From contig NC_083449.1 of NCBI RefSeq assembly GCF_020745735.1, forward strand, positions 8,468,923-8,532,922: a stretch of DNA of 64,000 bases, read 5' to 3'. The translations under genes were made by a program, and so were the position numbers. Of the stretch, positions 4,406 to 64,000 are shown piece by piece (positions within the stretch are counted from its first letter, which is position 1; each line of letters opens with the position of its first letter). The notes below the pieces were generated by a model. It saw only the letters and a list, made by a program, of their open reading frames with translations, was not told the DNA's origin and ran no database searches. The stretch is from Hemiscyllium ocellatum. Taxonomy: Eukaryota.

Positions 4406-4458
4406 GAGCAGCTCCGAGCCCGCTTTCCCTTATTCTGTGTCTGAAAGTGAGCGGCGCT

Positions 4459-5838: not shown

Positions 5839-6240
<402 letters not shown>

Positions 6241-8068: not shown

Positions 8069-8389
<321 letters not shown>

Positions 8390-19926: not shown

Positions 19927-20099
19927 AATTTTATAGACTTCTATTAAGTCTGCCCTCAGTCTCTGCTGCTCCGAAGTAATATACCTGGGTTTTTCTAGCT
20001 TCTCTTTATAGCTTGTACCCTCTAGACAACATTCTGGCAAACCTCTTCTGCACCCTCTCTAAATCCTCCACATCCTTCATGTAATGTGGAGACCACAAT

Positions 20100-23765: not shown

Positions 23766-23769
23766 AGGA

Positions 23770-38429: not shown

Positions 38430-39430
38430 AAAAAGGCTGTGTGAGAAAGAGTGGAGTGAGAAAGAGCACAGACTTCTCTCACAGGTCTGTGTGGGTGGGT
38501 GGGTGTGAGATTGTGTGTGAGACCGTGTGTGTTTGAGAGAGTGTGTGTGGCAGGGTATGTATGTACGTGAGAGAGTGTGTGAGACTGAGTGTGTCTGTGT
38601 GAGAGTGTAGGTGAGACAGGAAGAGAGAGTTGAGAGTCAGCATTTGTGTATGCGTGTGAGGGTGAGAGAGAGACTTGGCGGGAGGAAAGAATGGGTGAGG
38701 GTGTGTGTATGAGAGAGACAGCGTGTTGTGTGGGTAGGAAAGAGTTTGTGTGCGAGACAGTCTGTGTGTATGGGTGACAGAGTGTGCGCGACAGAGAGGG
38801 AGAGACTGTGTGTGATAGGGAAACATAGTGGGTGAGAGAGAATGTGTGAGAGTGTATAAGAGAGAGTGTGTGAGACAAAATGTGTGTGTGAGAGAGACTG
38901 AGTAACACTGTGTGCGTGAGAGAGTGTATGAGACAGAGTGCATGTGTGAGATAGAGTGAGAGAGTGCGTTTCAGACTTTGTGAGCGAAATTGAGTATTAG
39001 AGAGTGCGTGTGAGAGAGCGTGTGTGTGCGAGAGAGTGTGAGTGTGAAAGATAGAGAGTGTGTGAGAAAATGTGTGTCTGTGTAAGAGTGTGTGTGTGTG
39101 AGACAGAATGTGTCTGCGTGAGAGAGTGTGCATGAGACAGAAACAGAGAGAGATTTGATGAGAATAAGTGTATGTGTACGCATGTGAGGGTGAGAGGAAA
39201 AGTGTGGGCGAGAGGAACAAGTGTGTGAGATTGTGTGCGTGAGAGAGATAGAGTTTGTGTGCATGTATGTGAGAGAGCATGTGTGTGTGAGAGTGTGTGA
39301 ATGTGAGATAGAGAGTGTGTGTATTTGAAACAGTGTGAGAACGAGATTGTGTGTGGGAAAGTGGATGTGTGTGTGTGTGTGAGAGAGAGAGAGACAGAAA
39401 GAGAGAGAGACAGTGTGTGAGAGAGTAGAG
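38430..39430 (+). repeat. (GT)/(GA) mixed low-complexity tract, ~1 kb
   Basis: Degenerate GTGTGAGAGA repeats; source of the spurious His/Thr/Ser/Leu-rich ORFs. Confidence 0.95.
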
Positions 39431-40191
39431 ACAAAGTGTTATGCTGTTCTAAAGCATCTGGGCCAAGATGCCAGTGGCGCCTAGTTTTTACAATTTAGTC
39501 TAGTCCTATGTGCTTGTATTTGAAATGACAAAACTGCATTCGCTTTCATCACTACCATGGACAGCCTATTCCAGACACTCACCACCCTTTGTGTGAAAAA
39601 ATAGCACCACTGGACTCTTTTGTATCTCTCCAGTCCCACTTTGACAAAACCATCATCACCTTGTAGAAGGGTATAGGTGTGCACTTGTGATGGCAAGGCT
39701 ATGTGCCAAGTGCTGGAGAAATAGGATTAGATAACAATGAGGTGCTTACTTTTGACCAGCACATATGCAATGTGCTGATAGGCTATTGTCTGTGCTGTAG
39801 ACTTCTACAACGCCGTGCCATTGACTCTTAACTATCCTCTCGGGAAATTAAGAATGGGGGCAATTAACGCTCACCCAGTCAATGATGCCCACGTCACATG
39901 AGCGAACGTAAAAAATTGTGATCGTTTTTAACATGAATTGAGTTGAATTGATGACCACATTCTCGTGGTTACTAAGGATTTGGCCATTGGAGTGATGGAG
40001 AAGGGAAAGCATAGAAGGAGGACCTTCAGCCCATTGCCTCTGTGCTGACAGTTTTGAGTAACAGTTTAATCTTGACTGCTCGATCTCTGCTTCCATTCAT
40101 CAGCTCCTCCCCTGACAGTAATCAGCCTTCTGTGAAACATGTGACTGACAGTCAGACCAAGTTGAACTCGAAAGGCAATGTGTCATATGAG

Positions 40192-43855: not shown

Positions 43856-43975
43856 TTACTTCCGCGGAATATTCATGTAAACGTTTCCATCCCCTCCGTC
43901 TTCTTCCTGCGAGGGCTCGCTGAGGTCCACTGTGGCGTATGCGATACAATAATCATCGGGGTCAGTCTTTGAATC
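43856..43975 (-). CDS. FCRL-like last coding exon (cytoplasmic 5)
   Basis: Phase 0; DSKTDPDDYCIAYATVDLSEPSQEEDGGDGNVYMNIPRK*; ITIM IAYATV. Confidence 0.85.
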   Translation of the reverse strand, partial: DSKTDPDDYCIAYATVDLSEPSQEEDGGDGNVYMNIPRK

Positions 43976-46900
43976 CTGCAATGGAATGATATTGGAATGA
44001 ATTTGGAATCGAGTGGGAGCAAGAAGCTGAAGGGGAAGGGGAGGTCAGTTGGGGTACAGGTAGCAGGGAGTCTCAGAGGAAGGTGGGAATCACCAGCAGG
44101 CGGTTCCGGGCCTGCAACTTAGAAATCTGTCGGCAAAGTGATACTGTCCCAACCTCTGAGCCAGGAGGGCAGAGTTCAAGTCCCACGTGCTGCTGTGGTG
44201 TGCCATGTAGATATAAAAGCTGGAAGGTGATGTGGGAGCGGGGCAGGACTTTGGTGCGGCCAACATCTGCACTATCATAAGGTTGTGATACACTGGAGGG
44301 GATGCAGAGGAGATTCACCAGGACGTTGTCTGGGATGGAGCAGTTCAGTGATGAAAAGAGGCTAGATAATCTCAGCTTGTGTTCTTTGGAATAGAGTAGA
44401 CGGAGCTGGTTTGATTTTGTTTCCTTTTACTTATGGGACGGCATCGTGGCTGGGCCCAGAATTTGTTTCCCTGTCTCCAGTTGCTCTCCTGAGCCATTGT
44501 ACTCCCACCTTCTGGAGATTAACTCACAATTCACGTAGGGAGGGAATTTCTGCATTTAGACCCAGCGACACTGAAGGAACGGCTGATGTATTTCCAAAGG
44601 ATGTTGAATGTCTCACTAGGGTTGGTGTTCCCGTCTGCTACCCTTGTCCTTAAGTGGAATTAGCTGTGGATTTGAAAGGTGCTGTCTGAGGATCTTTGCT
44701 GACTTCCTACAGTGCATCTTGTAGATGGTACACACTGCTGCTATCAATTGGGTCCAAATGACAACGGACTGGCAAGTATTTAACGTCAATATCAGTGATG
44801 TTGTAACAATGTATGAAAGGGAACTGAAACATCAACACTAATATTGCCCCAATTTTGAAACTCACTTGTCTCTTCGCATTGGAAGTGGAATGCGAACCAA
44901 TGAGTAATCTAATCCATTGAGAAAGTGTTGCCGGTTATTTTCCATCGTGTTTAAAGGCAGACACAAAGCTGGGAGGGAGGGGGAGCAGAGAAAGAGGATG
45001 CAGAGATGCGTCAGTGTGATTTGGACAAGTTGAATGAGTGGACCAATGCACGACAGCTGCAGGATATCGTGAATAAGCGTGAGATGATCCAACTGAGAGC
45101 AAAAACAGGATGGTGAATTATTATCTGAATAGTGATGGATTGGGAAAGGGTGAGGTGTAATAAGGCTGGGCGCCCCTCATACACCAGTCACTGCAAGTGA
45201 ACATCGCAGAAGCAGCAGGCGGTGAAGCAGGTAAATGGAATGTTTGTCTTCATAGTGGGAGGATTCGAGACCAGGAACAGTGATGTCTCGCTGCACTTGT
45301 ACTGGGTGAGACCACATCCTGGAGTACTGTGTGTGCAGTTTGGGGTCTTCCTGTCTGAGGAAGGACGTTCTGTCTATGGGGGAGGGGGGAGGGGGGTTTA
45401 GGAGGGTGTCTGCAGGGAAGATTTCCCAATGTGATTCCAGGGATGGCAAGACTGACAGATAGAGAGAGAGTCTGGATTAGTTAGGATTATATTCACAGGA
45501 GTTCAGAAGCATGACGGCGAATCTAATAGAATTGTAACAGGACTAAACATGGTGAACACAGGAAGTGTGTTCCCGATGAACAGGAGTGAGTACAGAACAT
45601 GGGGATTACAGTCTAAAGGAGACGGACTGGTACTAAGTTGGGGAGTAATATCTTCACCCAGAGAGTGGGGAGCCTGTGGAGTTTTCTGCCACAAAAAGCA
45701 GTCAGGGCCAGAACACAGGATGTTATTTAGGAAGGAGTTGGATAGAGTTTTTAAGGACTAAATAGAGAAAATGGGGGAACAGGAGACTGAGTTGGATCAA
45801 ATCTTATAGAATGGGGAGAGTCGTCTGCAAAGGCTGAATGGCCTACTCCTGCCCATACTTTCTATGACATATGCTTCAATTAGTCTGATAATAATCAACA
45901 GTTGATGTTTTACATTGTGGATGCAAGGAATAAATCTAGCTGTACTTTGTATGGCAATAGCCGTGGTCTATTTAGACTTAAAATGTAACATACCTTCTTA
46001 CCATCGGAGGAAAAAACAATACTCTTCCCTGAAAATAAAATACAACAAGATGAAATGGATCTGGACCCAACGAAGGCTGATCAATACTAAATACAGAGCT
46101 GCATCTGTTGAAATCATAGCTCTGCTTTTATCAACTTTGAAAAAAAAGAAAAAAGAATCAATGCTATACTTTCTAATTGGATTCCGAATTTCTCAATCAA
46201 TCCCGACACTGCAGAATATCGCATTTAGAAAATTCGGATCTATTAAAATCGTACAATTGGTTTTCTGATAAATAAGACGGCTTATCAGTTGTTAGGATGT
46301 GGGTCAGTGCAACATCTTGAACAGGCCATCTTAATCTCATCAGCCTTTGTGTCACATGCCCAGTTGTTCAGAAACGACTGGAGTGAGCTATTCAGGTTGC
46401 ATACATTTCGGATTAAACCTCTGAATGTTGCTAGTTCAGTGTAGTTCACCTGGTTGGATGGCTGGAGTTTGCAATGCATTCTAACACCAGCTGAAATTAC
46501 CCTGAAGAACTCTCCTTCTAAACCTCTAGTTTCTCATGACGCATGATGACCGACGAATTAATTTTGACAATCCTCCCACTCCTCTCTCCACCCCCCCCCC
46601 CCACCCCACCCCGTCTCTGTCTTTCGCTGTCTAATGAGATAATGGCCTGGACGAACATGACATTTACAGCTCTTCCCCTGACACGGTGACTGAAATGAGA
46701 GACAGATCTCATTATAGATAAGACCAATTTCAGTTGAAAATGAGTTTATGGGTGTTGAGAAGCATCTGTATGATAATTCTAAGTTCAATTCTCTGAGCAA
46801 CAATATAATGGGCGATGCTTTTATTTTCTCCGTCATCTCAAATCGGTGAGTGACAATATTTAGCCAATCGGCTTTGAGCATTATGTGACAAAAACAGGAC

Positions 46901-47722
46901 TTGTTTTCTGTCTCTCCAAAGATGCTGAGTTTCTCTAGCACTTTCTGGGTTTATATGCTGTAAAACTAAATCTTTTTCTCTCTCTTTCTCTCCACAGACG
47001 CTCCCACACCTGCTGAGTTTCTCCAGAAATGTCTGAATTTGTTTGAGATTTTCAGTATCTGCAGTTGTTAGCTTTATATGAAAATGGTCTATAATTGCCT
47101 CAGTGAATGTGTATACATGTGCAAAAAGTGATTCTGACGCAACTACTATCATAACCCACCCACCAACATACACAGCTACATCCCTCTTTAATTGCTCTGT
47201 GAATTTGTTTTGGGTAGCTGACCACATTTAAACGATCTCTGAATTCTTTGCCTTCACCCTCCTCAGCCACTGGGATTGTGCTATTGTTGGAGCTTCAGTA
47301 ATCTCACCCCCACTGATCTCCCACAATCCCATCTCATACATTCGTAGTATTGAAGAGAAGAGATCTTTACCAGCCTCTGTTCTCTTTTTGATGGTGACCT
47401 CTGAATAAACCAAATCCGCAGTGGAGTTTCCTACAAAGAAATAAAGTGTAACAAGAAACACACATCAATCTGACAGCTTCGCTGTAAAGGGCTAAATGAT
47501 CTATAGATCAAATAGAATTGATAGATACGTAGGTAAGAAAGATTGATAGGCAAATACATTTTAGACTGAGATAGATAGGAGCTTGATTAGGAAGGGGGAT
47601 GAAGATTAATAGTGAGAAAGGAGGAGAGTCAGGTTGAGGAATATATCAGCCCCGATTGAGGGGGAGAGGTGCCTCAGTAGGCTGAATTGCCTAATTCTGC
47701 TCCCATATCTCATGATCTTATC

Positions 47723-47774
<52 letters not shown>

Positions 47775-50700
47775 CATGTATACAGAGACATTTCATTAGA
47801 AATCATTAAGTTAGCCAAGACCTCTCTAAAGACTGCTGTACAGGAAACGTGATCCTCTTCATTATTATTTGCTCAGGCCACATTTGGAGTATTGTGTATT
47901 GTTTTGTTCGCCAAGCGAAAGTGAGGACTGCAGATGCTGGAGATCAGAGTCAAGATTAGAGCGGTGCTGGAAAAGCACAGCATGTCTGGCAGCATTCGAG
48001 GAGCAGGAAAATCGACGTTCCGGGCAAAAGCCCTGCATCAGGAATGTGGCAGGGACCCTCCGGGGTGTAGAGATAAATGGAGCGGGGCGAAACTGGGGAG
48101 AAGGTAGCAAAGAGTATAAAAGGTGTATAGAGGTCGGTATGAAGGTGATACGTCGGACGGGAGGGTGCAGTGGATAGGTGGGAAGGAAGATTGGCAAGTA
48201 GGGTAGGTCATGAGAATGACCTGAGCTGTTAGGTTGGAACTGGGGGAAGGTGGGGAAGAGGGTAAATGTGGAAACTGGTGAAGTCCACGTTTCTGCCCTG
48301 GGGTTGAAGTGCTCCGAGGTGGAAGACAGGGTGCTCTTACTCCAGGCAACAGGTGGTAAGGGAGTGGTCGTGGAGGAAAACCAGGACCTGCATGTCCTCG
48401 GCAGAGTAGGACGGGGAGTTGAAATGTTCAGCAACAGGACGGTGGGGTTAGTTGGTGCAGGTGTCTCGGAGATGTTTCCTAAAGCGCTCTGCAAGAAGGA
48501 ATCCAGTCTCCCCAATGTAAAGGAGACCGCATCGTGTGCAATTGGTACAGTAGATGACATTGGAAAATGTGCAGGTGAAACTTTGAAGGGTGTGGACGGC
48601 TACTTTGGGGCCTTGGATGGAGGTGAGAGGGGAGGTGTGGCCCCAGGATTTGTAATTCTTGTGGTGGTAAGGGAAGGTGCCAGGAGGGGAGGGTGGGTTG
48701 TTGGTGGGCGTGGAACTGACCAAGTAGTCATGGACGGAACGCTCTTTGTGGAAATTAGAAAGGGGTGGGGAGGGAAATATATCCCTGGTGGTGGGGTCCA
48801 TTTGGAGGTGCCTGAAATGTTGATGGATGGTGTGGTTTATGCAGATCTTGGTAGGGCGGATGGTGATGTCGGGGGTGGGGGGCGGGTGGTTCTGTCCTTG
48901 TTGCGGTTGGACAGGTGGGCTTTGAATGCGGGCATGGATGAGATGCAATGGAGGGCTTCTTCAACCACGTGGGAAGGAAATTACGGCATTTGAAGAAGGA
49001 GGCCATCTGGTGTGTTCTGTGGTGGAACTTGGTCCTTCTGGGAGCAAATACGGTGCAGGCGGAGGAATTGAGAATGTAAGATACCTACCAGACGATGTGG
49101 AAGTATTAGAAAGAGTGCAGAGAATGTTCACTAGGATGTTACCAGCTCTCAAGGACATTGGCCAAGAGGAAAGGTTAAATCGACTAGGATTGTTTTCACT
49201 GGAAAGACAGCTTTTGAAAGGAGACCATATAGAGATCTATGACATTATAAGAGGCATATACAGGGAAGATAGTGAAAGGCTTTTTCCAGGGTTGATGTTT
49301 CAACTTACAAGGGGGAACATTTCAAGGTGAGAGGGGGAAAGGTTTAAGGGAGTTGTGCAAGGGAAGTTTTTTACATAGTAAATGGTTACACCCTGAAAAG
49401 CATTGCCAGAAGTGACTGTGGAAGCAGGCACGTTTAACAGGCCTATGGATGGTCACATGAACAGGGAGGGTAGAGACCAAATAAAGGCATGAAGTATTTT
49501 GTTTAGTTTGGTTAGAACATGATGATCAGCACAGGCTTGGAGTTCCCAAGGGCCTGTTCCTGTCCTGTACTTTTCTTTTGTTCTTTTTTTTCCTTTTCAT
49601 GGCCCCCGTTAAACCTTTTAGATTAGATTAGATTACTTACAGTGTGGAAACAGGCCCTTCGGCCCAACAAGTCCACACCGACCCGCAGAAGCGCAACCCA
49701 CCCATACCCCTACATTTACCCCTAGCACTACGGGCAATTTAGCATGGCCAATTCACCTAACCTGCACATCTTTGGATTGTGGGAGGAAACTGGAGCACCC
49801 GGAGGAAATCCACGCAGACACGGGGAGAACGTGCAAACTCCACACAGCCAGTCGCCTGAGGCGGGAATTGAACCCGGGTCTCTGGCGCTGTGAGGCAGCA
49901 GTGCTAACCAATGTGCCACCGTGCCACCCACCATCCATCGAGAAGGTAACGTTTCTTCCTGTTATCTTTTCTAAGCTCCTCATCATTTTGTACATCACAA
50001 ACAAGAAGCAGTTAGCATTTTGGAGGGTTAAAGGGATTGAAATTTTGGGCATTGAAAGCGGGGAAGCAGGGACTGAGTTGGATGTTCAGCCACGATTCTA
50101 TCAAATGGGCAGAGCAGGCTAGAAGGGCCAAATGGCCTATTCCTAGTTGCTATAGGAACCAGAGTTTGAGTTGGATGGTTAGCCATGATCATAATGAACG
50201 GTGGGGCAAGCAAGAAGAGCTGAATGGCCTACGCCTGTTAGCTACTTTCTGCATAACACTTCAGCCACAGCAGCTCTAAGGAAATCGGCCCCATTCGAGC
50301 CCGTCTGACGGTTCGGATGGTTATCCAGAATTGCTACCAGGTTGCAGTACACTCTGACTGTGTGGGGCTCTTGAATCACACCGATACAATGGCACTCACC
50401 AGCATTGTGTGCTGCTCCAACTACTGCATACTCCAGATTGCTGCCTGCTGCCCCTTCACCAGAAGGTTGGGATCTAGTTACAGTTGAAAGGAGAAGAAAA
50501 GGAAGTCGTCATTTCGAACACAATGCTTTCAAAACCATGTTCAAATTTAAGAAAACGGCAAAGCTATCAAACAAAATAAAAAAAAACTCAGTGAGACCTG
50601 GTATTCCCTGGTCCCATGTCTCTGGTTTCCAGCCAAACACGAAGTTTTCTCACCCACAAGGAGCTGCCCAGTTCTCTATCTTGTTTTCACTCTTATCCTT

Positions 50701-53700
50701 TGGGGAAGGTGATCCGCCATCCTTACCTGGGCTGGGCCAACATGCGACTCCATATCCCGGTTAAATATTACTGCCCTCTGGGGCACTTAGGGATCGACAA
50801 CAAATGCTGTCCTAGCCAGTGACAGAATCATTCCCAATAATGAATAAAAGTTGTCTGGGACCTTCCTGGAGAATAGTATGCTGGTTTGTCGATAAGACAC
50901 AGGTTAAAAGGATGCAGTCATATCCAAGCTCCGTCTATGACTTCTTCATTTCTGTCATCTCTCCCTGATTGAGAGGAATCGGGATAAACAATGGCAAATA
51001 TAAAAACTGTAGTTTCAGTCACTTACTCCCTGGGCTGTGACACAGTTGACGAATTGCCTGCAGGGAAAGAGAGAATATTCTCAGCATAATTTACAGTAGC
51101 TCTGCACTGTCACAGACAGGAGCTGCCGAAGTATTTTCTCAGTCATAAACAGGGGGCATACACATCAATAGATGACAATTGCCAAGCCTGTCATAATCTG
51201 AGCTGAAAATGTGTTGCTGGAAAAGCGCAGCAGTTTAAGCCTGTTGTAATGCATTAAACAACTTAACATAAGTTTAGGGTGATGGGTAGGGCTCGTGTGA
51301 GGGGTAGGATTCTGATAACAGTTAAGGTTAGTGTTCGGGTATTTCGCTGAGGTTCGTGGTTAGTGTTATGTTAAGAGTTAGGTTTAAGGTTAGCATTATG
51401 GTGAAGTGTATAGTTTGGATTCAGGTTATGGTTAGAGGCAGGTTAGGTTTAGGGTTAGGACCAGGGCTAGAGTTAGGTTTCGGATTAGCATTAGCTGTTT
51501 CGTTAGGGCCAAAGTTAGAGTTAGGGTGAAGGTTATGATTGAGTTACGATTAATTTTAAGGTCTGAGTTTGCGTTAAGGATGGGTTTGAGTCTATGGTTA
51601 GGTTTCAGGTAAGGATTAGGTTGAGCTAGGTTTAAGGTTAGGGTTAAGCTTCGGATAGGGTTTAATTTACGGGTAGAATTAGGTCAGCCTACCCAGCGGA
51701 CAATGAATAAACTTAGGAAGAGATAGGCAATGTTTTAACGAGTCATAGTTTAAAGAGAGTGAGGCAGTAAAGTGAAGTTGATCCACATGCATTGCACTAA
51801 ATGACAGAGCAAAATCCTGAGGTACTGTGACATAGAGTGGTGGGGTGTGGTGGGTCACAGTTACCCAATCCAGCAGGCTAGCTCCCGACTGTCAGGAACA
51901 CGGCCTACTCCAGATCCCGACCTTCACCTCCTTCCCCCCGCTCTCCGGTTCAGCTGAAAAGATACATTGTGTTAGAGGGAGGGGGTGGGGGTTAGCACTG
52001 TCATTGTGTGAGGATGTGTAACAAGTCTCATTCCCATTGGAAGTTACAGACCTGTGTCCCTCCAGTGGAAGTAGTACCACAACACAATCAGGCCAGCCAA
52101 CAGCAGAACTGGGAGGAGCGACGCCACGATTTCCTTGGAATAACCCCGAGCTGGAATCCAACAAGAATATTCAGCTCACATTAACAAATTCACCAGGAAG
52201 TTTTATCACATCACCCCTGCATGAGTTGCACAGTTAATATCAGATTGAACAACACCTACAGATATGTAACTCCCTGCCAGCATAGAGGTATCGAGAGTCT
52301 CAGTGTGGCAGAATTTGCCCCACTGAGCTACCTACACCAACCCCACTTTCCCACACTAACTCCACTTTCCCAAACTAACCCTTCACAGCCTTCAATGTTA
52401 TGACATTTCAAGTGCGGATCCAAGTACTTTGCAAAGGTTGGGAGATTCCCTGCTCGGCAGTATGTTCTAATCCCAACTACCATTTGGGTGAAACAATCCT
52501 CAAATCTCCCCTTAAACCTCCCGTCCTTTAATTTAAAATGGCGTTTCCATCCTTGACATTGGTACTGACCCTTTTACTACAGGGATCACCTGTTTATTTT
52601 TTCCCCAGTCCCTTCCCCGTTATGTTGCGGCTGTACAGGACATTGGTGAGGCCAAGGGTGGAATACTGCGTGCAATTCTGGTCTCCTTCCTATCGGAAAG
52701 ATGTTATGAAACATGAAAGGGTTCAGAAAAGATTAACAAGAATGTTGCCAGTGTTGGGGGATTTGAGCTATAGGGAGAGGCTGAACAGGCTGGGGCTGTT
52801 TTCCCTGGAGCGTCAGGGGTTGAGAGGTGACCTTATAGAGGTTTACAAAATCATGAGGGGAATGGATAGGATAAATAAACAAAGTATTTTCCCAGGGGTC
52901 TGGAAGTCCTGAGCTAGAGGGCAAAGGTTTAGAGTGAGAGGGGAAAGATATAAAAGATACCTAAGGGACAACTTGTTCACACAGAGGCTGGTACATGTGC
53001 GGCATGAACAGCCAGACGACGTGGTGGAGGTTAGTACAATTGCAAAATTTAAAAGGCATTTGGATGGGAATATGAATAGGGAAGGATTTGGAGGGATTTG
53101 ATCGGGTGCTGGCAGGTGGGACTAGATTGGGTTGGGATATCTGGTCGGCATGGACGGGTTGGACTGAAGGGTTTGTTTACTTGCTGTACATCTCTATGAC
53201 TCTATATCTATCAGGTTCCCCTCTCAGCATTTCCTGTTCCATGGAAAAGATTCCAAGATTATCCAGCCTCCCTCTCTTCCTCGCTAAAATCCAGGGAACA
53301 TCCTGGTAAATCTACTCTGCATACTACCATCTCCATGAGGTGTTCAATTCCAGTTTTTTTATCGCATTCAAATTCCACCAGGAACAAAAACACCCAACAC
53401 CATTCCGGATCAATAACCTATGTTAATACCACCTAGCTATCACCTCCCCAACTGAGATGGTTAACAGTTTCTGATTGGCACAGACTGGATGGAGCTAATG
53501 GTCTTTCTCTGCGGTCTGTCTATGTTCAATCTGACTGTCAATGTTACCTCGTAGTGTGAATTCTATGTAGTCGCTGGTCACATTAAAAATGGTGTGGTTG
53601 GCTCCTTTGTTGATTGCTGCACAGTGATACCTCCCGACATCATCTCTCTGGAATGAATGAATAACCAGCTCACCACCGTCAGCAGTCACATGGTAGCTTG

Positions 53701-56700
53701 CACTGCCGTTTCTTAGCGGCGTGTTGTCACGGTACCAAACGAACTGGGGCTTTGTGCCTTCCCTCACCCGACACCGGAGAACAAGGCGGTCCCCAGACTG
53801 TATCTCAGTCCCGTTAATGAAGAAAATTAGCACAGCATCTGTAACAGGAACTGAGGAGAAAACACACCGTGACAAAAAAGCATGGAGTTTACCCATTGAT
53901 TCAGACCCTCAACTGGAACCAGTTTGACACAATGGTTTTAAAAGAGAGTTGCGGAATTCAATAGATTAAAAAAAACTAATGCAATGGATGGATGGCATTA
54001 AACTGGAGAGAATACCGAAGAAATGTACAATGATATTGCAAGGATTCAACAGTCTGAGTTTCAGGGAGAGGCTGGGTAAGCTTAGCTCTTTCTTTTCAAG
54101 CGTAGGAGACTGAGCTGATATCACCAAGAAGTGTATAAGATCTTGGTTGGGGTGAATTAACTCAGTCTGTTTCCTAGCCATGTGGAGTCGAGGACTAGAG
54201 GGCAACAGTTTAAGTTTCAACTAGAAAGATTAAAAGGGAAACCTGAAGAACAATTCTTTTACACATCAGGTGTAACGCATATGGAATGAGCTGCCAGTGG
54301 AAGTGGTTGAAGAGGGTACACAAACAGCACTTAAAAGTCATTTGGACAAGTACTTGGATAGGAGTGGTTCAGAAGGATATTAGACCAAGTGCAGGGACAT
54401 TTGGGATGGACATTTTGGTAAGCATGGACCAGTTTGAGCAGAAGTTCCTGTTTTGTTACTGTAGGGCTCTATGATTCTGATGTGTAAGGCTATGCCGCTT
54501 TTGTTTTAGTAAGTGTGATGCTGGAAACGCATAGTTGACGTTTTGAGTATAAGCTCTTCATCACATTCCTGATGAAGTGTTTATGCCCGAAACATTGACT
54601 CTCCTGCTGCACGAATGATGCCTAACTAGCTGTGCTTTTCCAGCTCCATACCTTTTCACTCTGACCTCCAGCATCTGCAGTCCTCTCTCAGTCTCCGTGT
54701 TGCTTTAGTCAAAGGTATGGTGTTCAAGAACGAAGCACCAGCTTTGAGTTGGTCCCAGCAGCAGTTTTCCCGAGCTGATGGTTTAGTTACTCTTTGGGAG
54801 AGAATCCTCGTGAACTTACCTATCACTGCGATCTCTATGTCTTCACTGTGCTGAGGGCCTGTCACTTCATTTCTCACTGAGCAATGGTAAAGGCCTTCGT
54901 CACTTCTGCTGATAGGCCCAATGTTGTAAACAAGTTCAGTGTTGTTAGAAAGCTCTCCGTACAGTTCCACACTTGAGCTGTTGTAGAATTGGTAATAAAT
55001 CGGCAGAGAACCATTGGAGACTGAACAAATTAAGTATCCTGGGTCTCCTTCGATCAGATCCTTTCTGGGTTGAATTATTAGTTCCGGTTTTGACACTGGA
55101 ATTCCTGTAATCATTGATCATTGCATTTGGCGGAATTAATTGCAAACTCAACTATGAACATCATCACAGTCACACAAAAATGCATATCCTTTTGTTTTTG
55201 TTCATTCGTTGGATGTGGGTATCACTGGGTACTCTAGTACTTATTGCTCATCCCAAATTGCACAGAGGACTTTCGATGATTGTTGGACTGCAATTGAATT
55301 GAATTCAGATTCTCCCATCTGTTATAGTGGGATTTGAGCCCAGAATATGAGCCGATTCTCTGAATTTTTAGGACATAGAATAGTACAACCCAGGGACAGG
55401 CACATCGTGTCTGCGCATGACTGTGATGTCATTCTGTACGAATTCCATCTGACTACATGTGGGTCCTGATCTCTGTACTCCCTACATATTCAAGTGTCTG
55501 TCTATATGCCTCGTAAACATTGCTATCGTATTTGTTTCTACCAACTACTCTGGCAGTGTTCGACAGGCACCGATCATTCTCTGTGTAGAATCATAGAGTC
55601 ATAGAGATGTAGCGCACCTTCAGTCCAACTCGTCCGTGCTGACAAGATATCATAAATTAATCTCATCCCATTTGTCAGCAGTTGACCCTTATATCTCTAA
55701 ACCCTTCCAATTCATACACCCAACCAGATGCCTTTTAAATGTTGTAATCTTACTGGCCTCCCCCACTTCCTCTGGCAGCTCATTCCATAGATGCACCATC
55801 CTTTGTGTGAAATTGTTACCCCTTAGGTCCTTTTAATCTATTCCCCTCTCACCCTAAACCTACGCTGTCAAGTATTGGACGCGCCCACCCAAGGGAAAAG
55901 ACTTTGCCTACTTATCATTTCCACGCTCCTCAAGATTTTATAAAGTTCTATAAGGTCACCTGTCAGCCTCTAATATTCCAGGGAAAACAGCACCAGCCTA
56001 TTAAGTCTCTCCCTATTGCTCAACTCCTCCAACCTTATATCCCTGTATTTTTTTCCAAAACTCTTTCAAGTTTCACAACATCCTTCCTTTTGGAGGGAAA
56101 CCAGATTTGCACACAATATTCCAGAAGTGGCCTAACCTAAGCACTGTACAGCCGCAATATGGCCTTCCAACTCCTATATCCAATGCTCCAACCAGTAAAG
56201 GAAAGGATATTAATTAGATTCTTCATTACCCAATCGATCTGCATCCAAACTCCACTTTCAAGAAACTGTGAATCTGGACTCCAAGGTCTCGTTATTTAGC
56301 AGCACTCCGCAGGACCTTACCAATAATTGCATAACTCCTGCCTTTATTTGCCCTTCTAAAATGCAGCACCTCGCACTTATCTAAATTACACTTCACCTGC
56401 CACTCCTCCGCCCATTGGCCCATTTGATCAAGATCCTGTTGTACTCTGAGGTAACCTTTCCTCGCATATCTCCTTTAAACGCTCCTTCTTTCACCTCAAA
56501 GCTGTGCTCCCCACACTAGTATTTGATATTTCCAACCGGGGAGAGAGACTCTGACTATTCACTCTGCCCATGCCTCTCATAATATTGTGTACATCAAACA
56601 AGTCCCCTTACAGTGTCCAATCCTCTGCTGAAAACAACTCGTTTGTCCAACCTGTCCTCATACTCCAATCCAGGCATCATCCACGTAAACTTGTTTTGCA

Positions 56701-58952
56701 CCATCTCAGAAGATTCCACATCTTTGTTATAGTATATCCTTCAAATTAGACAGAACTAAAGTTTTATATAGTTGCAATATGACTTGCCAACGTTTACACT
56801 CATTGTCCTGACTGATGACAAGCATGCCATATGACATCTTTACCACGTTATCCACTTGGGTTGCCACTTTCAGGGAACTATGTACCTGCACAGCAAGATC
56901 CCTCTGTACATCAATGTTCCCAAGAGTCCTGCCATTTACTATATATTTTTCTCTTGCATTTCACCTACCAAAAAATGAATCAGCTCATAATACACTGGAT
57001 TAAAATCCATACACAATTTCTGTGCTCAACTTTCAGGCTGATCTATATTCTTTGACAACCTTGCACACTGTCCGCAACTCCGCCAAATGTCATGTCACCT
57101 GCAAACTTACTAATTAGAAGTGGTAAGCGCAGAAAAACTGTTATTGATCATCGAGAGACATCCAGAGGTCGCAGTCTAAAGGAGATGGAGTAGGACTGAA
57201 ATGAGGAGGAATTCCTTCACCCAGGGAGTGGGGAGCCTGTGGAATTCTCTGCCACAGAGAATGGTCGGAGTCGGAACATTGAATCCTGTTCAAGAAGGAG
57301 GTGAATAGAATGCTTAGGGCCGTAAGGAAGAGTGCAAGTGGCCAAGAGACTGAGTTGGAAAAGCATCCACAATCCAAGTGTTTGGGCATATCAAGCTGCA
57401 AGGATCGAATGGCCTGTTGCCATATACATGTTCCAATAATTTTCTAGGCAATGAATCCCACAGGCTCCTCAATCTCTGTATGACAACATCTCACCCAATA
57501 CGCTGTGCGCTTTGTCTCGAGCTCTCCAATATATGTCTGTGAGATGTGGGGAGTGATGATAAATTGTCTCTATTCTGAGTCCTTAACAGTTAAAAAACGG
57601 ACGATAATAAATGACACTCACGTCTGATGGACAAATAGAGTTGATTACTGCATTTCCACACTTTCCCGTCTGTGACTTCACAATGGTAAGTACCCGAGTC
57701 TGTCGGACGAGCTGATTCAGAGATGTAATCACTGTGGTCTGATGGAGACTGGAGAGGGACCTCATTTCTGTAAAATCTGTACCACAAGGAAGCTTGGGAG
57801 GGATACTCTTCAATCCCGCACACCATTTTAATTCGTTGGCCATCAAACAGCTGGCCCTCAGGATGCACGGTCAACATCGGGATGGCAAACGCCTCTGGAA
57901 AGCAAAAGGACATGTTTCTGTTTCAACCTGTAGAGTGCCTGGGCTTGGGGAAGCTCAGTGATCAGAACGAGAGCAAGAAAATCCCGAGACGGCGTTAGTG
58001 CATGAGATTCCTAATAATCCTTCAAGGCCAATCAAGGCTGTTAACATCGTGTCAGCTCGAGGTCAGATTTGGTAACGATTGCGATAGAATTTGGAATGAA
58101 TAAATACAACTTCAGCGAGAGTATTGCACTCGGTTCTGGAATCCACATTCTAGGAGGGACAGCACAGCTCAGGGAGAAGGTGTAGAGGCAGATTTATCAG
58201 GATGTTGCCCTTGGGGCTGGAGAGTTCCAGATGATGGCAAGACACTGGAGAAAGTGTTTTTGTTTCCTTAGAGCAGAGGGGATTGAGACGAGGGTGGGGG
58301 TCATGATTGAGATTTATAACATGATGAGGCGTGTAGATAGGGCAAACAGGAAGAAACGTAATGCCCTTCGTGGAGGGATCAATGATTGAGGGAGGGAGTA
58401 TAGATAGAAAGTAAGGGGCAGGAGTTTTTAGAGGAAATGTGAGAGAAAACATTTTCACTCAGAGACTCTGGACCTTACTGCCTGTAAGGTTGGAAGACGC
58501 CGAAACCTTCATCACATTGAAGAGTGTTTAGATATGACTTCACAATGCAAGGTTATGGGGCTACGTGCTGGGGAAATGGGGATTAGAGAATAGTGAGGTG
58601 GCTGTTTCTGACTTGATGGGTCGAAGGGCATTTAATATGTTCTTCGGACTCTGCAATAATGATAAATAGTTACGTTTAACAGAAATGTGAATGCTGTTGC
58701 TCCTCTTCATCAGTCCATAAACCGTATTGATCGCTTCACAGGTGTAATTCCCAGAAAGGTTTGCAGCCGCTGAGTTAATGGTGTACACGCTTCCATGATC
58801 AGGTGCAGTCTGCAGTGCTACGCTGTCTCTGTAAAACGAGTAGTGAAGCTGGACGGAGGGCCATGCCGCCAGGACAGTGCACGTCAGCGTGAACTCGAGC
58901 CCCTCGAATACTTCAGCTGGCTCCACCCTCAGCACGGGCTTGGCAAATCGTT
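43856..58952 (-). CDS. FCRL-like (Fc receptor-like / PECAM-related) inhibitory Ig-superfamily receptor, 5'-partial, 10 exons, ~519 aa in window
   Basis: Exons 58674-58952, 57622-57894, 54820-55104, 53548-53850, 52052-52150, 51027-51057, 50400-50473, 47371-47430, 45994-46028, 43856-43975 all have AG/GT boundaries and join in one open frame ending TAA. Confidence 0.85.
45994..46028 (-). CDS. FCRL-like cytoplasmic exon 4
   Basis: TATTTTCAG|...AAG|GTATGT; GKSIVFSSDGKK; supplies the phase 1 to 0 change needed by the flanking exons. Confidence 0.75.
47371..47430 (-). CDS. FCRL-like cytoplasmic exon 3
   Basis: TTTGTAG|...G|GTAAAG; GNSTADLVYSEVTIKKRTEA; ITIM LVYSEV. Confidence 0.85.
47723..47774 (+). 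repeat. (TAGA)n microsatellite
   Basis: About 13 perfect TAGA units. Confidence 0.97.
47918..49075 (-). mobile_element. Penelope-like element family A, 3' portion with GIY-YIG endonuclease, nested in a CR1 fragment
   Basis: FTCTFSNVIYCTNCTRCGLLYIGETGFLLAERFRKH; decayed hammerhead at ~48010-48045; flanking CR1 reads PHLEYCVLFCSP / YLPDDVEVLERVQR. Confidence 0.9.
49618..49929 (-). mobile_element. HE1-type SINE, full length
   Basis: Reverse complement of the 6329-6643 family with (AATCT)n tail. Confidence 0.92.
50400..50473 (-). CDS. FCRL-like cytoplasmic exon 2
   Basis: TAG|...G|GTGAGT; ESQPSGEGAAGSNLEYAVVGAAHNA; ITIM LEYAVV. Confidence 0.82.
51027..51057 (-). CDS. FCRL-like cytoplasmic exon 1
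   Basis: TTTCCCTGCAG|...GA|GTAAGT; GNSSTVSQPR. Confidence 0.8.
51270..51690 (+). repeat. Degenerate (TTAGGG)-like hexamer tract
   Basis: GGTTAGGTTTAGGGTTAGGA, GTTAGAGTTAGGG, GGTTAGGGTTAAG etc. at 6-bp period. Confidence 0.8.
52052..52150 (-). CDS. FCRL-like transmembrane exon
   Basis: TTCCAG|...G|GTCTGT; ARGYSKE-IVASLLPVLLLAGLIVLWYYF-HWRDT; uncharged TM. Confidence 0.85.
52615..53205 (+). mobile_element. CR1 ORF2 3' fragment (intronic)
   Basis: LYRTLVRPRVEYCVQFWSP; tail CTCTATGACTCTAT. Similar short CR1 3' fragments occur throughout 32.8-62.9 kb. Confidence 0.9.
53548..53850 (-). CDS. FCRL-like membrane-proximal Ig domain exon
   Basis: VPVTDAVL...LRCRVREGTKPQFVWYRD...DDVGRYHCAAIN; phase 1-1. 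Confidence 0.92.
54510..54690. mobile_element. Penelope-like family A mini insertion with back-to-back hammerhead remnants
   Basis: ...GCTCTTCATCA-CATTC-CTGATGAAG...GCCCGAAAC: antisense and sense motifs 5 bp apart. Confidence 0.75.
54820..55104 (-). CDS. FCRL-like Ig domain exon (resembles FCRL D4/D5 type)
   Basis: IPVSKPEL...LICSVSNGSLPIYYQFY...SDEGLYHCSVRNE; phase 1-1. Confidence 0.92.
57622..57894 (-). CDS. FCRL-like Ig domain exon (resembles D3 type)
   Basis: AFAIPMLTV...MVC...LWYRFYRN...DSGTYHCEV; phase 1-1. Confidence 0.92.
58674..58952 (-). CDS. FCRL-like Ig domain exon (resembles D3 type)
   Basis: RFAKPVLRVEP...EG...TLTC...QLHYSFYRD...SGNYTCEA...KRSNSIHISVK; phase 1-1. Confidence 0.92.
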
Positions 58953-59162
58953 CTGGAATGGAACATGCAATCGGGACTTATCAAGCAACTGTTATCATCA
59001 CAGAAAAGAAGGCACTATGGTGACACGTAATGAAGAATGTGAGCATTGACTGACAAAGTACATGGGAGAGGGCAAAACGTTATCTTTCTCTTACTTCCCA
59101 AATTTCAAACTCCGTTTTGATGCCACTAGTGCCATAGAATGATAGAGACATACAGCATGTAT

Positions 59163-59480
59163 GGCACGGTGGCACAGCGGTTAGCCCTGCTGTCTCACAG
59201 TGCCAGAGACATGGGTTTAATTCCTGCCTCAGGTGACTGACTGTGTGGAGTTTGCACATTCTCCCCATGTCTGCGTGGGTTTCCTCCGGGTGCTCCGGTT
59301 TCCTCCCACAGTCCAAAAATGTACAGGTTAGGTGAATTGACTGTGCTAAATTGCTCGTGGTGTTAGGGACAGGGGTAAATGTAGGGGAATGGGTCTAGGT
59401 GGGTTGCGCTTCGGCCGGTCAGTGTGGACTTGTTGGGCTGAAGGGTCTGTTTCCACACTGTAAGTAATCTAATCTAAAAA
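59163..59480 (+). mobile_element. HE1-type SINE
   Basis: Homologous to 6329-6643. Confidence 0.9.
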
Positions 59481-60169
59481 TGTAAACACACACTTGTGCC
59501 CAACTTGTCCATGCGGATGAGATCTCCCATGCTGATCTCCTCCTATTTGCCACAATTTGGCTCATCACCCTCAAAACCTTTCCAACTCAAGTTCACAGAG
59601 ACAAAGAAAGAAAGACCATTAGACAAAGTCATACAGAGACATAAGGTGGGGAAACATTTGGCACTTGCCTCACAGCCAGCCTAGGATACAGAAAAACAAA
59701 AAGGGTTTTGAGCTATAGGGAGAGGCTGAACTGGCTCAAGCATTGCAGCAGAGGGGTGACCATCAACGTTTATAAAATCATGAGAGGTCGAGATAACGAG
59801 AATAGTCACTTTCCCGGGGTCAGACAATCCGAAAGCAGTTGGCATAGGTTGAAGATGAGAGGGCAAAGATTTAAAACTGACCTCAGGGGTCACTTCTTCC
59901 CAAGGAAGCTGGTGCATGCATTGATCGAGCTGTCAGTGGAAATGGGTACAATGACAACATTTAAACAACATTAGGTAATGGTATGTGAAACGAAAAAAAA
60001 ATGGAGGGATATTGACCACAAGCAAGCAAATTGGACAAGATCAGTTTAGGAAACTTAATTGACATGGATGAGTTGGACCGAAGATTTGGTTTCCATGTGT
60101 TTCTATGGCTGTATAAAACTAACTATTAATTTAGGTATTGATTTACTTTTTGAGAAGCAATCTGGTAGT

Positions 60170-61300
60170 GTGTGGCAATAAGCATAGCTGGTGGGAACAT
60201 TGCAACAATTATTCCAGTTCATCTCCTTCACACACACTTTCAACCATGACATCAAATTTACCTGGACCATCTCAGATACACCCCACCCCCTTCCAGGACC
60301 TTTTCCTCTCCATCTCCAACAAACGATTCAACACTAGCATCTGTTTAAAATCCACTGACTCACACACCTCCTCCGACCCAACTCCCCCATCAAAACGTGA
60401 TCCCTTACTCCCAATTCCTTTGCTTCAGCCGTATCTGCTCCCAGGGTGAACAATTTCATTCCACAACATCCCAGATGGCCTCCTACTCTGACGACCACAG
60501 TTTCTATACCCCGTGACCCACAATGACCTCAACCACATCTCCACGTTTTCCACACCTTTGGCCCTGAAACACCACTCCCCAACCACAGCAAGGAGAGAAT
60601 CCCCCTGGTCCTCACACCCCAATCTGCAAATCCAGTGCATCATCTTCCACCAATTCCTCCAGCTATAGTCAGACCCCATCACCAATACAATATTTCCCTC
60701 CCTACCCCATCCGCTTTCCAAAGGGGCCATTCACTCTTCGACTCCCTCATGAGGTTGACACACCCAACCAATCTCTCTTCCATATTGGCATCTTTCCCAG
60801 TGTCTAAAGGAGCTAGGAAATCTGATCCCACATGTCTCCTCTTACCTTTGTCCAAGGCCCAAAAGAATCATTCTAAATCTGACAGAGGTTCATCTTCATT
60901 TCTTCTAACCTGATTTATTGCATCCATTGCTCCCAATGTGGTTTCCTCTACATCAGATATTGAACAACAACTCGGGGACATGTTCAGAGAATATCTGTGG
61001 TCTCTACGCTCCAATCACCACCACCTTCCGGTTCCTGCCATTTCAACTCACCTTCACACTCCCCCAATGTCATGTCCACCCTGGGTCCAGTGAGTCATCA
61101 CAATCACCTTCAATGTACATCTACGTTTCGCCATCCCACCTACCTTCCCCCCAACCTGACACCCCTCCTTCTAATTATTCCTTAGCCAGCTTCCCCAACC
61201 GCAGAACTGATGAAGATCCTGGCCTGAAACTTCGACTCCCCTGCTCCTCTAATGCTGCTGGAACTGCTATGCGTTTTCCAGCTCTACACTTTATCGGCTA
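60170..61300 (+). mobile_element. Penelope-like element family A, old 3' portion
   Basis: PFQDLFLSIS...KSTDSH (PLE RT C-terminal motif); homologous to the reverse complement of 47918-49075; ends CTGATGAAG...GAAACTTC at ~61207-61235. Confidence 0.75.
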
Positions 61301-62649
61301 TTTGGTGTAATATCTTAGCTTCCATATAGAAACAGAAAATCACAGGTTTCATGCCTTAGGCCCATCATATTAATCCTGCATGCCCACAGCTGTCTATTCA
61401 TGGTTGCCTTGTATTAATCATTCATCGCAATTGCTGGTCAGCTTACCGATCCCCAGAGCGCAGTTAATGGTCAGCTGCATGGATGTGGGGAACAGGAGTC
61501 ACATGGAAGCCAGACCGTGTCAGGAGCGGCAAATTTCCCTCCCATAAGGTCATTAGTAGCCCTTTAAATTCCAGATTTTTATTATTAGGTCATGCTATCG
61601 CATAACAGATCCTTTCGCTCTTCTGCCCTTTAGTTTTCAACTCCCCTTCTCTATGGAGAAGAACATGTGGTGTTCACCTTATCTGTGCCCTTGTGATTTT
61701 GTAAACCACTATAAAGTCAGCCCTCAGCCTCCTTCACTCCAGGTGTAAAAAATGTCCCACGTTATCCATATGACTCAAACTCTTCATTTTCGTTTACAGC
61801 TTTATAAACCTTATTCTCACTATTTTAAAGTCAAATTCCACAATCTGCCATGACGACATCTGAACGCAGATCACTCCCTGCCTCACTGGATTAATGGGCT
61901 ACTGGTAACACCACTAAGCCATCACACGGCTGGTCTGTGGTTTGAGTCTGCAGCCTTATGAAGTGTCATTCTACAATCTTCTAATTTGTAATGAAAATTT
62001 CGATCATGTCTCTGTCCAAAACTCAGAATTTGAATTCATGATCTAAACCACAAAATTAGAAGTATTTTTATGTCCTTTGCTGCACTAGTCAATCCATCTT
62101 GAACGTTTGTGGTCTGGTTTGCTCACTGTCCTTGAATGAGGACAATGCCATCCCCATTGCCCCAGCCCACACTACTTGTCCCATTCCCTCTCGAAGTTTA
62201 CCTCGGTTAAAAAGAGAGAACCACATTTTTCTTTACTATCCCTGACAAATCAACAGGGTCTTGGGAACCTTTTCAGCACAACCACAATTTCTTCTGCACA
62301 GTTCTTAAATTACGAAGCAAAAGAGAAAGGGTATTGTGAGTACATTATGACATGAAGAGTTGCATCATTCAACGACATACGTGCGAAAACAGATTTGCAG
62401 AGATGTCACAAAGACTCTGTGGTCTGGGTTATATGGAGATGCTGGATAACTTGGAAAGTTTTTCCTCAGAGTGTCGGAACTGGAGGCATATAAAATCATG
62501 AGTAGCATGGATAGGGTGAATAGCCAGTTTTTTTCCCTGGGGTGGGGAGTCCAAAACCTTCAGGACATAGGTTTAACGTGAGTGGGGAAAGATGTAAAAA
62601 CGACCTGATGGGCAATCTTTTCACATAGAGGGCTTGTGTGCCTGTGCGT

Positions 62650-62681
<32 letters not shown>

Positions 62682-63289
62682 TGGGGGGGGAGGAGAGTGG
62701 GTATTTTGGGGGAGGTGATGGGGGGGTGAACGAGCTTCTAGAGGAAGTAGTAGATGCAGGTAAAATTACAACAGTTAAAAGATATATGGACAGCAACATA
62801 GATAGGAAAGGTTTAGAGGGATATAGGCCAAACGTAGGCAAATAGAACAAGCTCATGTTAGGAAATCTGGTCAGCATGGACGAATGAGGACAAAGGGCCT
62901 ATTTCCATGCTGCCTGACCTGACTCTATTTGGCTATGATGTGTCACAACCATCGACATGGGTAATATTTACGGATTGTAACAGACTCCACAAAAACTAAG
63001 GTTTGTTTTATGAGGAGAGACTGTCGAGGTTGTTCAGAGGTTAGAAGGATGCATACTTGTTTGTTGGTTAGCTCGATTGGATGGACACACAGTGATGCCA
63101 ACAGTGTGGCTCAATTATTGAACCAGCTGGAGTGACCATGAAGGATTCTCATTCCCAATCTCTCCCCTTGCCTGAGCTGTGGTGACCCTCAAATTAATCC
63201 ACCAGCTATCCCCCTCACACATGATAGCGTGGGATGGGGGTAACTTTATAATGTTTAATTTTAGTCATAGGATGCAAATAACAGATTGA

Positions 63290-63545
63290 CAGATGAGACA
63301 GGAGAAAACACAGATATTAATGAACTAAAACCTGCAACTCATTCTAAAAGAGGAAAGAGTTAACAGCAATCTAGTTGAGTAGTTGAATCAATGTTCAATA
63401 CATGGTATCAGTTGCATGACACTGTGATCTTTTGCTACAAATTCAGTGTCTTATTAGCCTGCTCCCAGCTGCCTGAGGAAGGAGAAGCGATCTGACAGCT
63501 AGAATTTCCCAAAAAGTCTGTTGGAGTATAATCTGGTGCTGTCTT
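63290..63545 (+). mobile_element. Penelope-like family B 3' region, decayed
   Basis: Homologous to the reverse complement of 20100-20330. Confidence 0.65.
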
Positions 63546-63549
63546 ATTA

Positions 63550-63952
63550 CACTAAAAACAGTCAGGTAGTTTGAAAGCTACTGGACCCAAAGAAGCAGCT
63601 CCATGCTAGTACCCTCTCTAGAACATCTCTCCTGAAAGAACCTGCGTTTCACTGTATCTTTTGTCCCAAGGGGCATTTATGGAGAAGGTGCAAGTATTTG
63701 GAACAGCATCATTAAGTTGGGTTGATCTATTGGGCTTTTGGACAGGTTAAGTTATTCAGTGTTCAGTTCTCTTTTATTTGTGTTTCTTTCAGTATTCCTT
63801 TGAATATATTCTATTTTGTTTAAAACTACCAGGTTTGAACAACTGCATCCCTCCTGAAATATGCACTATACACCTGCTTAAAATAACTAGCAATGTTAGG
63901 GTCTGGGCTACATTCTTGAAATGTTTTGAAGGAGTCTAGCTTGGTCCATGAC
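63550..63952 (+). mobile_element. Partial LTR of the Gypsy family seen at 13782-14400
   Basis: Colinear homology over ~400 bp with the reverse complement of 13782-14190; ends ...CATGACA. Confidence 0.8.
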
Positions 63953-64000
63953 AATAAGCCTTGCTCTTCGTTAGTGCAAGCCAAGCCCAACACATACGGA

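Follow-up and report, generated by a model that had tools for sequence, protein, structure and literature searches.

A probable FCRL-family receptor gene with three ITIMs in the epaulette shark

A stretch of 64,000 nucleotides from the epaulette shark Hemiscyllium ocellatum (contig NC_083449.1 of NCBI RefSeq assembly GCF_020745735.1, positions 8,468,923 to 8,532,922; hereafter the window, whose own numbering is used throughout) carries, on its minus strand, the 3' part of a gene for a receptor composed of immunoglobulin (Ig) domains, a transmembrane (TM) segment, and a cytoplasmic tail with three immunoreceptor tyrosine-based inhibitory motifs (ITIMs). Judged from its sequence, this locus is a genuine gene of the epaulette shark, already predicted by NCBI, and it probably belongs to the FCRL family, as part of an elasmobranch branch of the FcR/FCRL family. 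Indeed, its ectodomain contains the Ig domain types of this family (i.e., D1-, D3-, and membrane-proximal types), and each Ig domain is encoded by one phase-1 exon, as in FcR/FCRL genes (four out of four in the window, eight at the orthologous locus of Chiloscyllium punctatum). As in the inhibitory FcR members, an uncharged TM is followed by five cytoplasmic exons, with three ITIM-consensus motifs and a YxN motif. A previous sequence-only reading of this DNA had proposed an FCRL-like receptor rather than a relative of PECAM1 or MILR1, and this proposal survives the comparison of per-domain profiles, of tails, and of gene structure. The gene and its family are already in RefSeq; what we did not find in the literature searched is their recognition as FCRL family.

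The spliced minus-strand model joins ten exons into one open frame of 518 codons (Table 1). An AG acceptor is present in all ten exons and a GT donor in all but the last, and the outer limits of the studied feature are exact, 43856 being the end of the stop codon and 58952 the first base of Ig1. Each of the four Ig exons is entered with two codon bases and left with one. In Pfam, Ig1 is matched by Ig_2 (E 8e-15) and Ig4 by I-set (1e-13); Ig2 is also matched, and it shares 35% identity with Ig1. Between the tail and Ig4, a hydropathy scan reveals only one strongly hydrophobic segment, whose core, IVASLLPVLLLAGLIVLWYYF, is devoid of charged residues. The exons of 31 and 35 bp were sought because the phases of the flanking exons demand them. 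The first of these is the sole one of six 31-bp AG..GT/GC candidates to combine a pyrimidine tract, a CAG acceptor, and a GTAAGT donor, and the second has clearly the best splice sites among the 35-bp AG...GT/GC candidates. The exon set put forward by the sequence-only reading (four phase-1 Ig exons, an uncharged TM, and exons of 31, 74, 60, 35, and 120 bp in one frame) is thus exact in coordinates and lengths, with AG/GT at its borders, and the motifs it had named (LEYAVV, LVYSEV, IAYATV, and a terminal NVYMNI) are all read in the spliced frame. No further Ig exon was detected in 1-43000 or 59000-64000 by pattern scan and tblastn, leaving a window total of four; 58953-64000 holds no convincing candidate for a signal-peptide exon or for a 21-bp second signal exon, and the window introns hold no extra copies of the ITIM exons.

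The Ig1 sequence was used as a query against 1.8 billion representative proteins, which gave 1238 matches, and the spliced model was then compared by local BLAST with the fetched proteins and closer relatives. It matches a RefSeq protein of Hemiscyllium ocellatum (P0172, "platelet endothelial cell adhesion molecule-like") with zero mismatches, so the attribution to a shark made from the letters alone was right; the gene of P0172 occupies 39 kb of a 16.2-Mb scaffold (GCA_020745735.1). With the C. punctatum protein P0167 ("Fc receptor-like protein 5 isoform X2"), it shares 90% identity without gaps, and this orthologue contains both mini-exon peptides and uses every predicted junction. Nine further orectolobiform models are 70-88% identical to the spliced model. 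The peptide of the 31-bp exon is found in ten shark protein models, and both mini-exon peptides stand at the predicted places in most models. The peptide of the 35-bp exon is identical at 12 of 12 residues in P0167 and P0172, and differs by one mismatch in the orthologous genomic locus of C. punctatum (L001). This locus is collinear with the window, its introns being 88-92% identical and its exons, taken with 30-nt flanks, 94-98%. It yielded nine of the ten exons; the one of 60 bp coincides with a gap of the L001 assembly, and hence is missing from the protein model P0170. For eight of these nine exons, including those of 31, 74, and 35 bp, the AG/GT sites proved to be conserved (the sites of Ig4 lay outside the comparison).

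Table 1. Exons of the receptor gene in the window, from 5' to 3' on the minus strand
Feature	Position	Strand	Description	Basis
Ig exon 1 (Ig1)	58674..58952	-	phase 1-1; FcR/FCRL D3-type; domain 5 of 8 in orthologue numbering	read directly
Ig exon 2 (Ig2)	57622..57894	-	phase 1-1; FcR/FCRL D3-type	read directly
Ig exon 3 (Ig3)	54820..55104	-	phase 1-1; "GSLPIYYQFY" domain type, common to PECAM1 domain 6 and mammalian FCRLs	read directly
Ig exon 4 (Ig4)	53548..53850	-	phase 1-1; membrane-proximal, I-set-like	read directly
TM exon (stalk + TM)	52052..52150	-	99 bp; phase 1-1	hydropathy scan and sequence; 100% to P0172 residues 581-614
Cytoplasmic exon 1	51027..51057	-	31 bp; GNSSTVSQPRE; phase 1 to 2	splice-site listing, shark models, L001
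Cytoplasmic exon 2	50400..50473	-	74 bp; ITIM 1 LEYAVV; phase 2 to 1	read directly; L001 43091-43164, sites conserved
Cytoplasmic exon 3	47371..47430	-	60 bp; ITIM 2 LVYSEV; phase 1-1 cassette	read directly; alignment
Cytoplasmic exon 4	45994..46028	-	35 bp; peptide GKSIVFSSDGKK; phase 1 to 0	splice-site listing, orthologue
Last coding exon	43856..43975	-	120 bp including TAA; ITIM 3 IAYATV and C-terminal NVYMNIPRK (YxN)	100% to P0172 C-terminus

The receptor architecture initially claimed from the window was correct for the four Ig exons, the TM, and the tail, but these make up only the 3' part of a gene with eight Ig domains. Indeed, the orthologue P0167 has eight such domains, of which the window encodes domains 5-8, and L001 contains eight Ig exons, the next upstream one lying ~1.8 kb past the position equivalent to window base 64000. 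In total, four Ig exons and a signal peptide encoded by two exons precede, in the orthologue, the part equivalent to the window; in L001, the signal peptide is split into 31 nt of coding sequence and a 30-bp phase 1-1 mini-exon, which is followed by the first Ig exon. By its sequence, the window thus holds the 3' ~two-fifths of an intact gene, which runs off at 64000 and is 5'-incomplete. Based on the C. punctatum orthologue, the full gene would encode its signal peptide on two exons, each of its eight Ig domains on one exon, its uncharged TM on a further exon, and its cytoplasmic tail on five small ones.

The ectodomain was compared at several levels. Among the solved structures of the PDB, human FCRL5 is the best relative of Ig1, Ig2, and Ig3 (E about 1e-28 to 1e-37; Ig1 1e-33, Ig2 7e-28). 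Ig1 and Ig2 also align end to end with domain 3 of FcgRI (7e-10 and 5e-9, respectively) and with FCRLA, and Ig4 is a generic I-set domain. PECAM1 is likely represented in the PDB by its domains 1-2 only, which makes this test unbalanced between FCRL and PECAM1. Outside elasmobranchs, the best relatives of Ig1 are amphibian FCRLs. The look-alikes of Ig3 in the Protein Atlas belong to generic Ig clusters (FCRL2, CD22, JAM2) and are non-discriminating. A maximum-likelihood (ML) tree of 163 Ig domains groups the shark domains by position, with one elasmobranch clade per position. The PECAM1 domains are likewise separated into one clade per domain, which ranges from teleosts (where sampled) to birds and is devoid of shark members. 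Because this tree could not assign the family, we used profile-profile scores instead, i.e., an hhalign matrix of domain-type alignments whose groups were drawn from a small set of proteins (frog, turtle, and fish ones, and a single one from a cat). The type of Ig1 and Ig2 and the tetrapod FCRL D3-type are reciprocal best partners (161/162), the next partner being PECAM1 domain 4 (100-107). In the same way, the Ig4 type pairs reciprocally with the tetrapod FCRL membrane-proximal type (134/137, versus 82-86 for PECAM1 domain 6). Of the two N-terminal shark domain types, one is the reciprocal best partner of the FCRL D1-type (76/83), and the other scores best with the same D1-type (58), in this case not reciprocally. 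Used in place of the per-domain phylogeny that the sequence-only reading had named as a check, the profile comparison places Ig1, Ig2, and Ig4 with FCRL types, but not Ig3, which goes with PECAM1 domain 6.

The three motifs of the tail fit the ITIM consensus [ILVS]xYxx[ILV]; their tyrosines are spaced by 18 and 36 residues, and a fourth tyrosine, within NVYMNI, follows 20 residues further. Sharks and rays retain the four tyrosines, except for the first, lost in the Heterodontus protein P0088, and the third, lost in the Stegostoma protein P0166. By eye, the succession of "...VYSxV..." and of Y[EQM]N[FVIL] shortly before the C-terminus is common to shark, ray, frog, turtle, and cat proteins, and lamniform sharks have a terminal YENVP, as in the cat protein. 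On the contrary, PECAM1 tails have the ITIM VEYTEV and the ITSM TVYSE[IV] only, without terminal YxN. A hidden Markov model (HMM) built from 17 elasmobranch tails scores frog FCRLs at 14.5-19.3 bits, lion FCRL2 at 12.3, and every PECAM1 at 6.4 or less, the absolute scores being low; one unnamed teleost protein with CD22-type domains reaches 20.2 bits. Among the 16 further relatives whose TM was inspected, no activating partner with a charged TM was seen. The FcR family is described as having two-exon signal peptides (the "30/21 rule", with a 21-bp second exon) and inhibitory members with one to five cytoplasmic exons (PMC2413239), and the structure of the shark gene, with its signal peptide read in L001, agrees with this description, except for the 30-bp second signal exon.

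The 31- and 74-bp exons, taken together, and the 60-bp exon are frame-neutral cassettes. From the predicted proteins, the number of ITIMs appears adjustable by splicing or exon duplication, because P0172 skips the 31 + 74-bp pair and a C. plagiosum paralogue (P0169) has the 60-bp ITIM exon twice, and therefore two LVYSEV motifs. We also observed that the frame stays open past the Ig3 donor for 54 codons (54659-54819, minus strand) and past the Ig4 donor for 17 codons (53498-53547, minus strand), and that two models, P0179 and P0183 (from Stegostoma and C. plagiosum), end in peptides homologous to these read-throughs. This makes secreted isoforms possible, through intron retention at Ig3 or Ig4. 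Another predicted isoform of C. plagiosum, P0011, joins Ig3 straight to the cytoplasmic exons, without Ig4 or TM; a TM-less cDNA from Xenopus is comparable (PMC2413239).

Several observations weigh against an FCRL assignment, or against the model on which it is built. Ig3 and PECAM1 domain 6 are reciprocal best partners (123/114), rather than Ig3 and a frog FCRL type. The ML tree is not resolved at its deep nodes and places no shark domain with support inside a tetrapod FCRL clade. The domain-type groups behind the profile scores are not calibrated to the published D1-D5 numbering, of which D1-D3 are common to FCRLs and classical FcRs. The second signal exon of the orthologue measures 30 bp instead of the 21 bp typical of FcR genes. 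A frog PECAM1 query had no shark match that could stand for a true shark PECAM1, in a word-limited search in which a blank means little. Finally, the RefSeq isoform P0172 departs from the ten-exon model at three points: it omits the 31 + 74-bp pair (an in-frame loss of 105 nt); it lengthens the 60-bp exon to 123 bp (47430-47308) by using a distal donor; and it takes an internal donor of Ig2, losing the second cysteine of this domain.

These departures (two tail exons skipped, one extended, and Ig2 truncated), together with introns full of retroelement fragments, could be explained if this member of a multigene family were degenerating or no longer functional, in which case its open frame would be recent luck and its mini-exons would go unspliced. 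We consider this very improbable. Indeed, the ten exons are all open and every splice site is canonical; the exons are more conserved than the introns toward C. punctatum; and sharks and rays have kept the cysteines of the domains, the tyrosines of the tail, and, in Ig2 and Ig4, the tryptophan (a position occupied by F or Y in Ig1 and Ig3). Since P0167 and most of the models hold the mini-exon peptides at the predicted places, the ten-exon model is, as far as predicted proteins tell, the better-conserved isoform compared to P0172.

Another explanation is that the locus would be a shark orthologue or co-orthologue of PECAM1, acting in adhesion and signalling on endothelium and leukocytes through an ITIM pair on a multi-exon tail, and tandemly expanded. 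RefSeq does call the locus and several of its paralogues "PECAM-like", and no separate shark PECAM1 turned up in the search mentioned above. Besides the pairing of Ig3, whose single-domain scores with PECAM1 domain 6 reach 36.5 bits (against FCRL5, 128.9 bits in total, the best single domains giving 27 and 26), PECAM1 domain 4 has the shark D3-like type as its best partner (107), and LEYAVV and LVYSEV are similar to VEYTEV and TVYSEI of PECAM1. Yet only one of the six shark domain types pairs with PECAM1; the others pair with FCRL, at 161 versus 100 and 134 versus 86. The orthologue has eight Ig domains, of which the N-terminal ones are D1-type, and not six in one-to-one correspondence with PECAM1 domains 1 to 6, and none of the per-domain PECAM1 clades of the tree includes a shark member. 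The tails also differ: that of the locus carries three ITIMs and a YxN, with L and not T at position -2 of LVYSEV, while those of PECAM1 stay at or below 6.4 bits with the shark tail HMM and do not have the terminal YxN. Moreover, the domain 6-like (P6) type is present in cat FCRL2 too. As for the names, the automatic ones are mixed across the shark family (PECAM-like, FcgRI-like, FCRL2/3/5/6) and thus cannot decide between FCRL and PECAM1. We therefore regard a PECAM1 gene as improbable here, and the RefSeq name "PECAM-like" of the locus is misleading.

The main alternative to FCRL membership is an elasmobranch lineage issued from a common ancestor of FCRL and PECAM1, which would strictly belong to neither family and would have kept domain types later sorted into both families of bony vertebrates. 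The mixed hhalign affinities (FCRL D1, D3, and membrane-proximal types together with PECAM1 domain 6) and the lack of resolution at the deep nodes of the domain tree would fit such a lineage, and one frog/turtle FCRL domain type itself pairs best with PECAM1 domain 5 (103/97). An earlier paper cited in PMC2413239 reportedly, by its title, links the FCRL and PECAM1 families structurally. It has also been proposed that PECAM1 derived from an FCRL5-like gene (PMC7916592). On the other hand, the plan of the tail, which ends with a YxN, is that of FCRLs specifically, and the order of the domains (D1-type, D3-type, P6/D4-type, proximal type) parallels the one seen in FCRLs of frog, turtle, and cat. 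Mammalian FCRLs, too, carry a P6-type domain: residues 206-293 of a lion FCRL2 isoform have PECAM1 domain 6 as best profile (57 bits) and the shark Ig3 type as second, and domains 5-8 of human FCRL5 carry the opening "VPVSxP" and the "GSxPIxYxF" motif of Ig3. The Ig3 type is thus common to FCRLs and PECAM1 and is no marker of PECAM1 ancestry. Overall, we hold a lineage at the root of both families to be unlikely, and membership in the FCRL family to be the probable identity of the locus.

This identity bears on the history of the family. In several papers and reviews, one group has stated that cartilaginous fish are without every Fc receptor, including FcR-like molecules, and has asked how sharks cope without Fc receptors (PMC4016189, 2014; PMC5742104, 2017; PMC13337447, 2026). 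We found no description of cartilaginous-fish FCRLs in the literature searched, whose coverage excluded subscription journals. Relatives of the epaulette shark gene are present in carpet, bullhead, cow, mackerel, and ground sharks, as well as in sawfish, stingray, and electric ray, and several copies of the family lie on one 8-Mb scaffold of C. plagiosum. These predicted receptors show a family that contradicts the stated absence of FCRLs in cartilaginous fish. Since the FCRL-type domain order, gene structure, and tail are shared across sharks and rays, the family is probably older than the divergence of cartilaginous from bony fish. The interest of the locus is therefore twofold: it would correct the stated origin of the FCRL family, and it supplies a candidate shark Fc receptor.

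The receptor would be expressed on lymphoid cells, probably B cells. On co-engagement with an activating receptor, Src-family kinases would phosphorylate the three ITIM tyrosines; SHP-1, SHP-2, or SHIP, once recruited to them, would dampen the signalling, and the tyrosine of the C-terminal YxN could dock Grb2. This recruitment of SHP/SHIP and Grb2 is proposed by analogy, because of what is established for ITIM receptors, and immunoglobulin, which some members of the FcR/FCRL family bind and others do not, is one candidate ligand among several. We find it tempting to see here the missing shark Fc receptor system, i.e., an FCRL-type inhibitory B-cell receptor binding IgM, IgW, or IgNAR, an idea that we rate as rather unlikely. 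If it held, FCRL-type regulation of antibody responses would date back to the common ancestor of jawed vertebrates rather than to bony fish, and the mixed domain set would document a common origin of FCRL and PECAM1. A shark IgM Fc receptor was reportedly detected functionally in a study of 1988, according to its title as cited in PMC6795676. We did not find the cloning of that receptor in the literature, and the locus is a concrete candidate for it. Bamboo-shark B cells have been found to express genes labelled fcgr1a-like, fcrl3, fcrl5, and pecam1 (PMC11372145), which is a lead only. Single-cell reports of "pecam1" or "fcgr1a-like" in shark B cells may reflect the shark FCRL family.

The only neighbours of the receptor gene in the window are histone genes, apparently intact and of replication type, i.e., H2B (4447-4839, plus strand), H2A (5839-6240, plus strand), and H4 (8069-8383, minus strand), which form a cluster ~35 kb beyond its 3' end. 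In human, the FcR/FCRL region is 1q21-23. The human FCGR1A shares its locus with HIST2H2BF (PMC10449685). The histone adjacency in the shark may be the trace of an old linkage or a coincidence, and it is weak evidence because genomes hold several histone clusters. The remainder of the window contains open reading frames (ORFs) and fragments of non-LTR retrotransposon reverse transcriptases (17600-25900, plus strand; 48900-49330 and 52538-52912, plus strand), with a recurring "...LEYCVQFWSP..." C-terminal segment, and some of these fragments sit within introns of the receptor gene. The long His/Thr/Ser/Leu-repeat ORFs at 38393-39434 (minus strand) derive from a CA/CT-rich simple repeat and are a compositional artefact, not a gene.

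The shark gene can also be compared with known systems. CD22/Siglec proteins and MILR1, on B cells and mast cells, are ITIM-bearing receptors of the immunoglobulin superfamily like the shark one, and CD22 has a Grb2-binding YxN. A CD22/Siglec identity was rejected, as the shark gene is without a V-set domain and its profile scores are low. Indeed, the CD22 and Siglec-10 proteins used for comparison start with weak-scoring V-set domains, to which none of the eight orthologue domains is similar, and the CD22-type C2 profile gives 44-60 against the shark domains, versus 134-161 for the FCRL types. MILR1 (allergin-1), compared by its architecture, has a single Ig domain and was rejected in view of the four Ig domains of the window and the eight of the orthologue. 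FcgRI (CD64), through its domain 3, and FCRLA align end to end with Ig1 and Ig2; unlike the shark gene, FcgRI has three domains and a short tail without ITIM, and it signals through the FcR gamma chain. PECAM1 (CD31) shares with the shark gene a multi-Ig ectodomain of C2/I-set domains, a domain 6 of the Ig3 type with the GSxPIxYxFY motif, a tail split over many small exons, and two ITIMs, VEYTEV and TVYSE[IV], that resemble LEYAVV and LVYSEV. Unlike the shark gene, it is a single-copy gene with a signal peptide encoded by one exon, and it keeps six fixed domains from teleosts to birds, without a reciprocal match to the D1- or D3-types or a terminal YxN.

The closest resemblance is to the tetrapod FCRLs, i.e., mammalian FCRL1-6 and the frog FCRLs (XFL of Xenopus). 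The shark gene differs from them by its three tandem D3-type domains followed by a domain of the PECAM1 domain 6 type. Its orthologue has, as they do, a two-exon signal peptide, in which the second exon measures 30 bp versus 21 bp, and near the C-terminus, where they carry Y[EQ]N[VF], the epaulette shark has YMNI versus YENV. For the rest, both encode each Ig domain by a single phase-1 exon and share the order of their D1-, D3-, and membrane-proximal-type domains; both also have an uncharged TM, in the ITIM-bearing members of the tetrapod family, and a tail distributed over up to five small exons with YxxV/L/I motifs. Like the shark family, the tetrapod FCRLs form tandem multigene families with many domain architectures.

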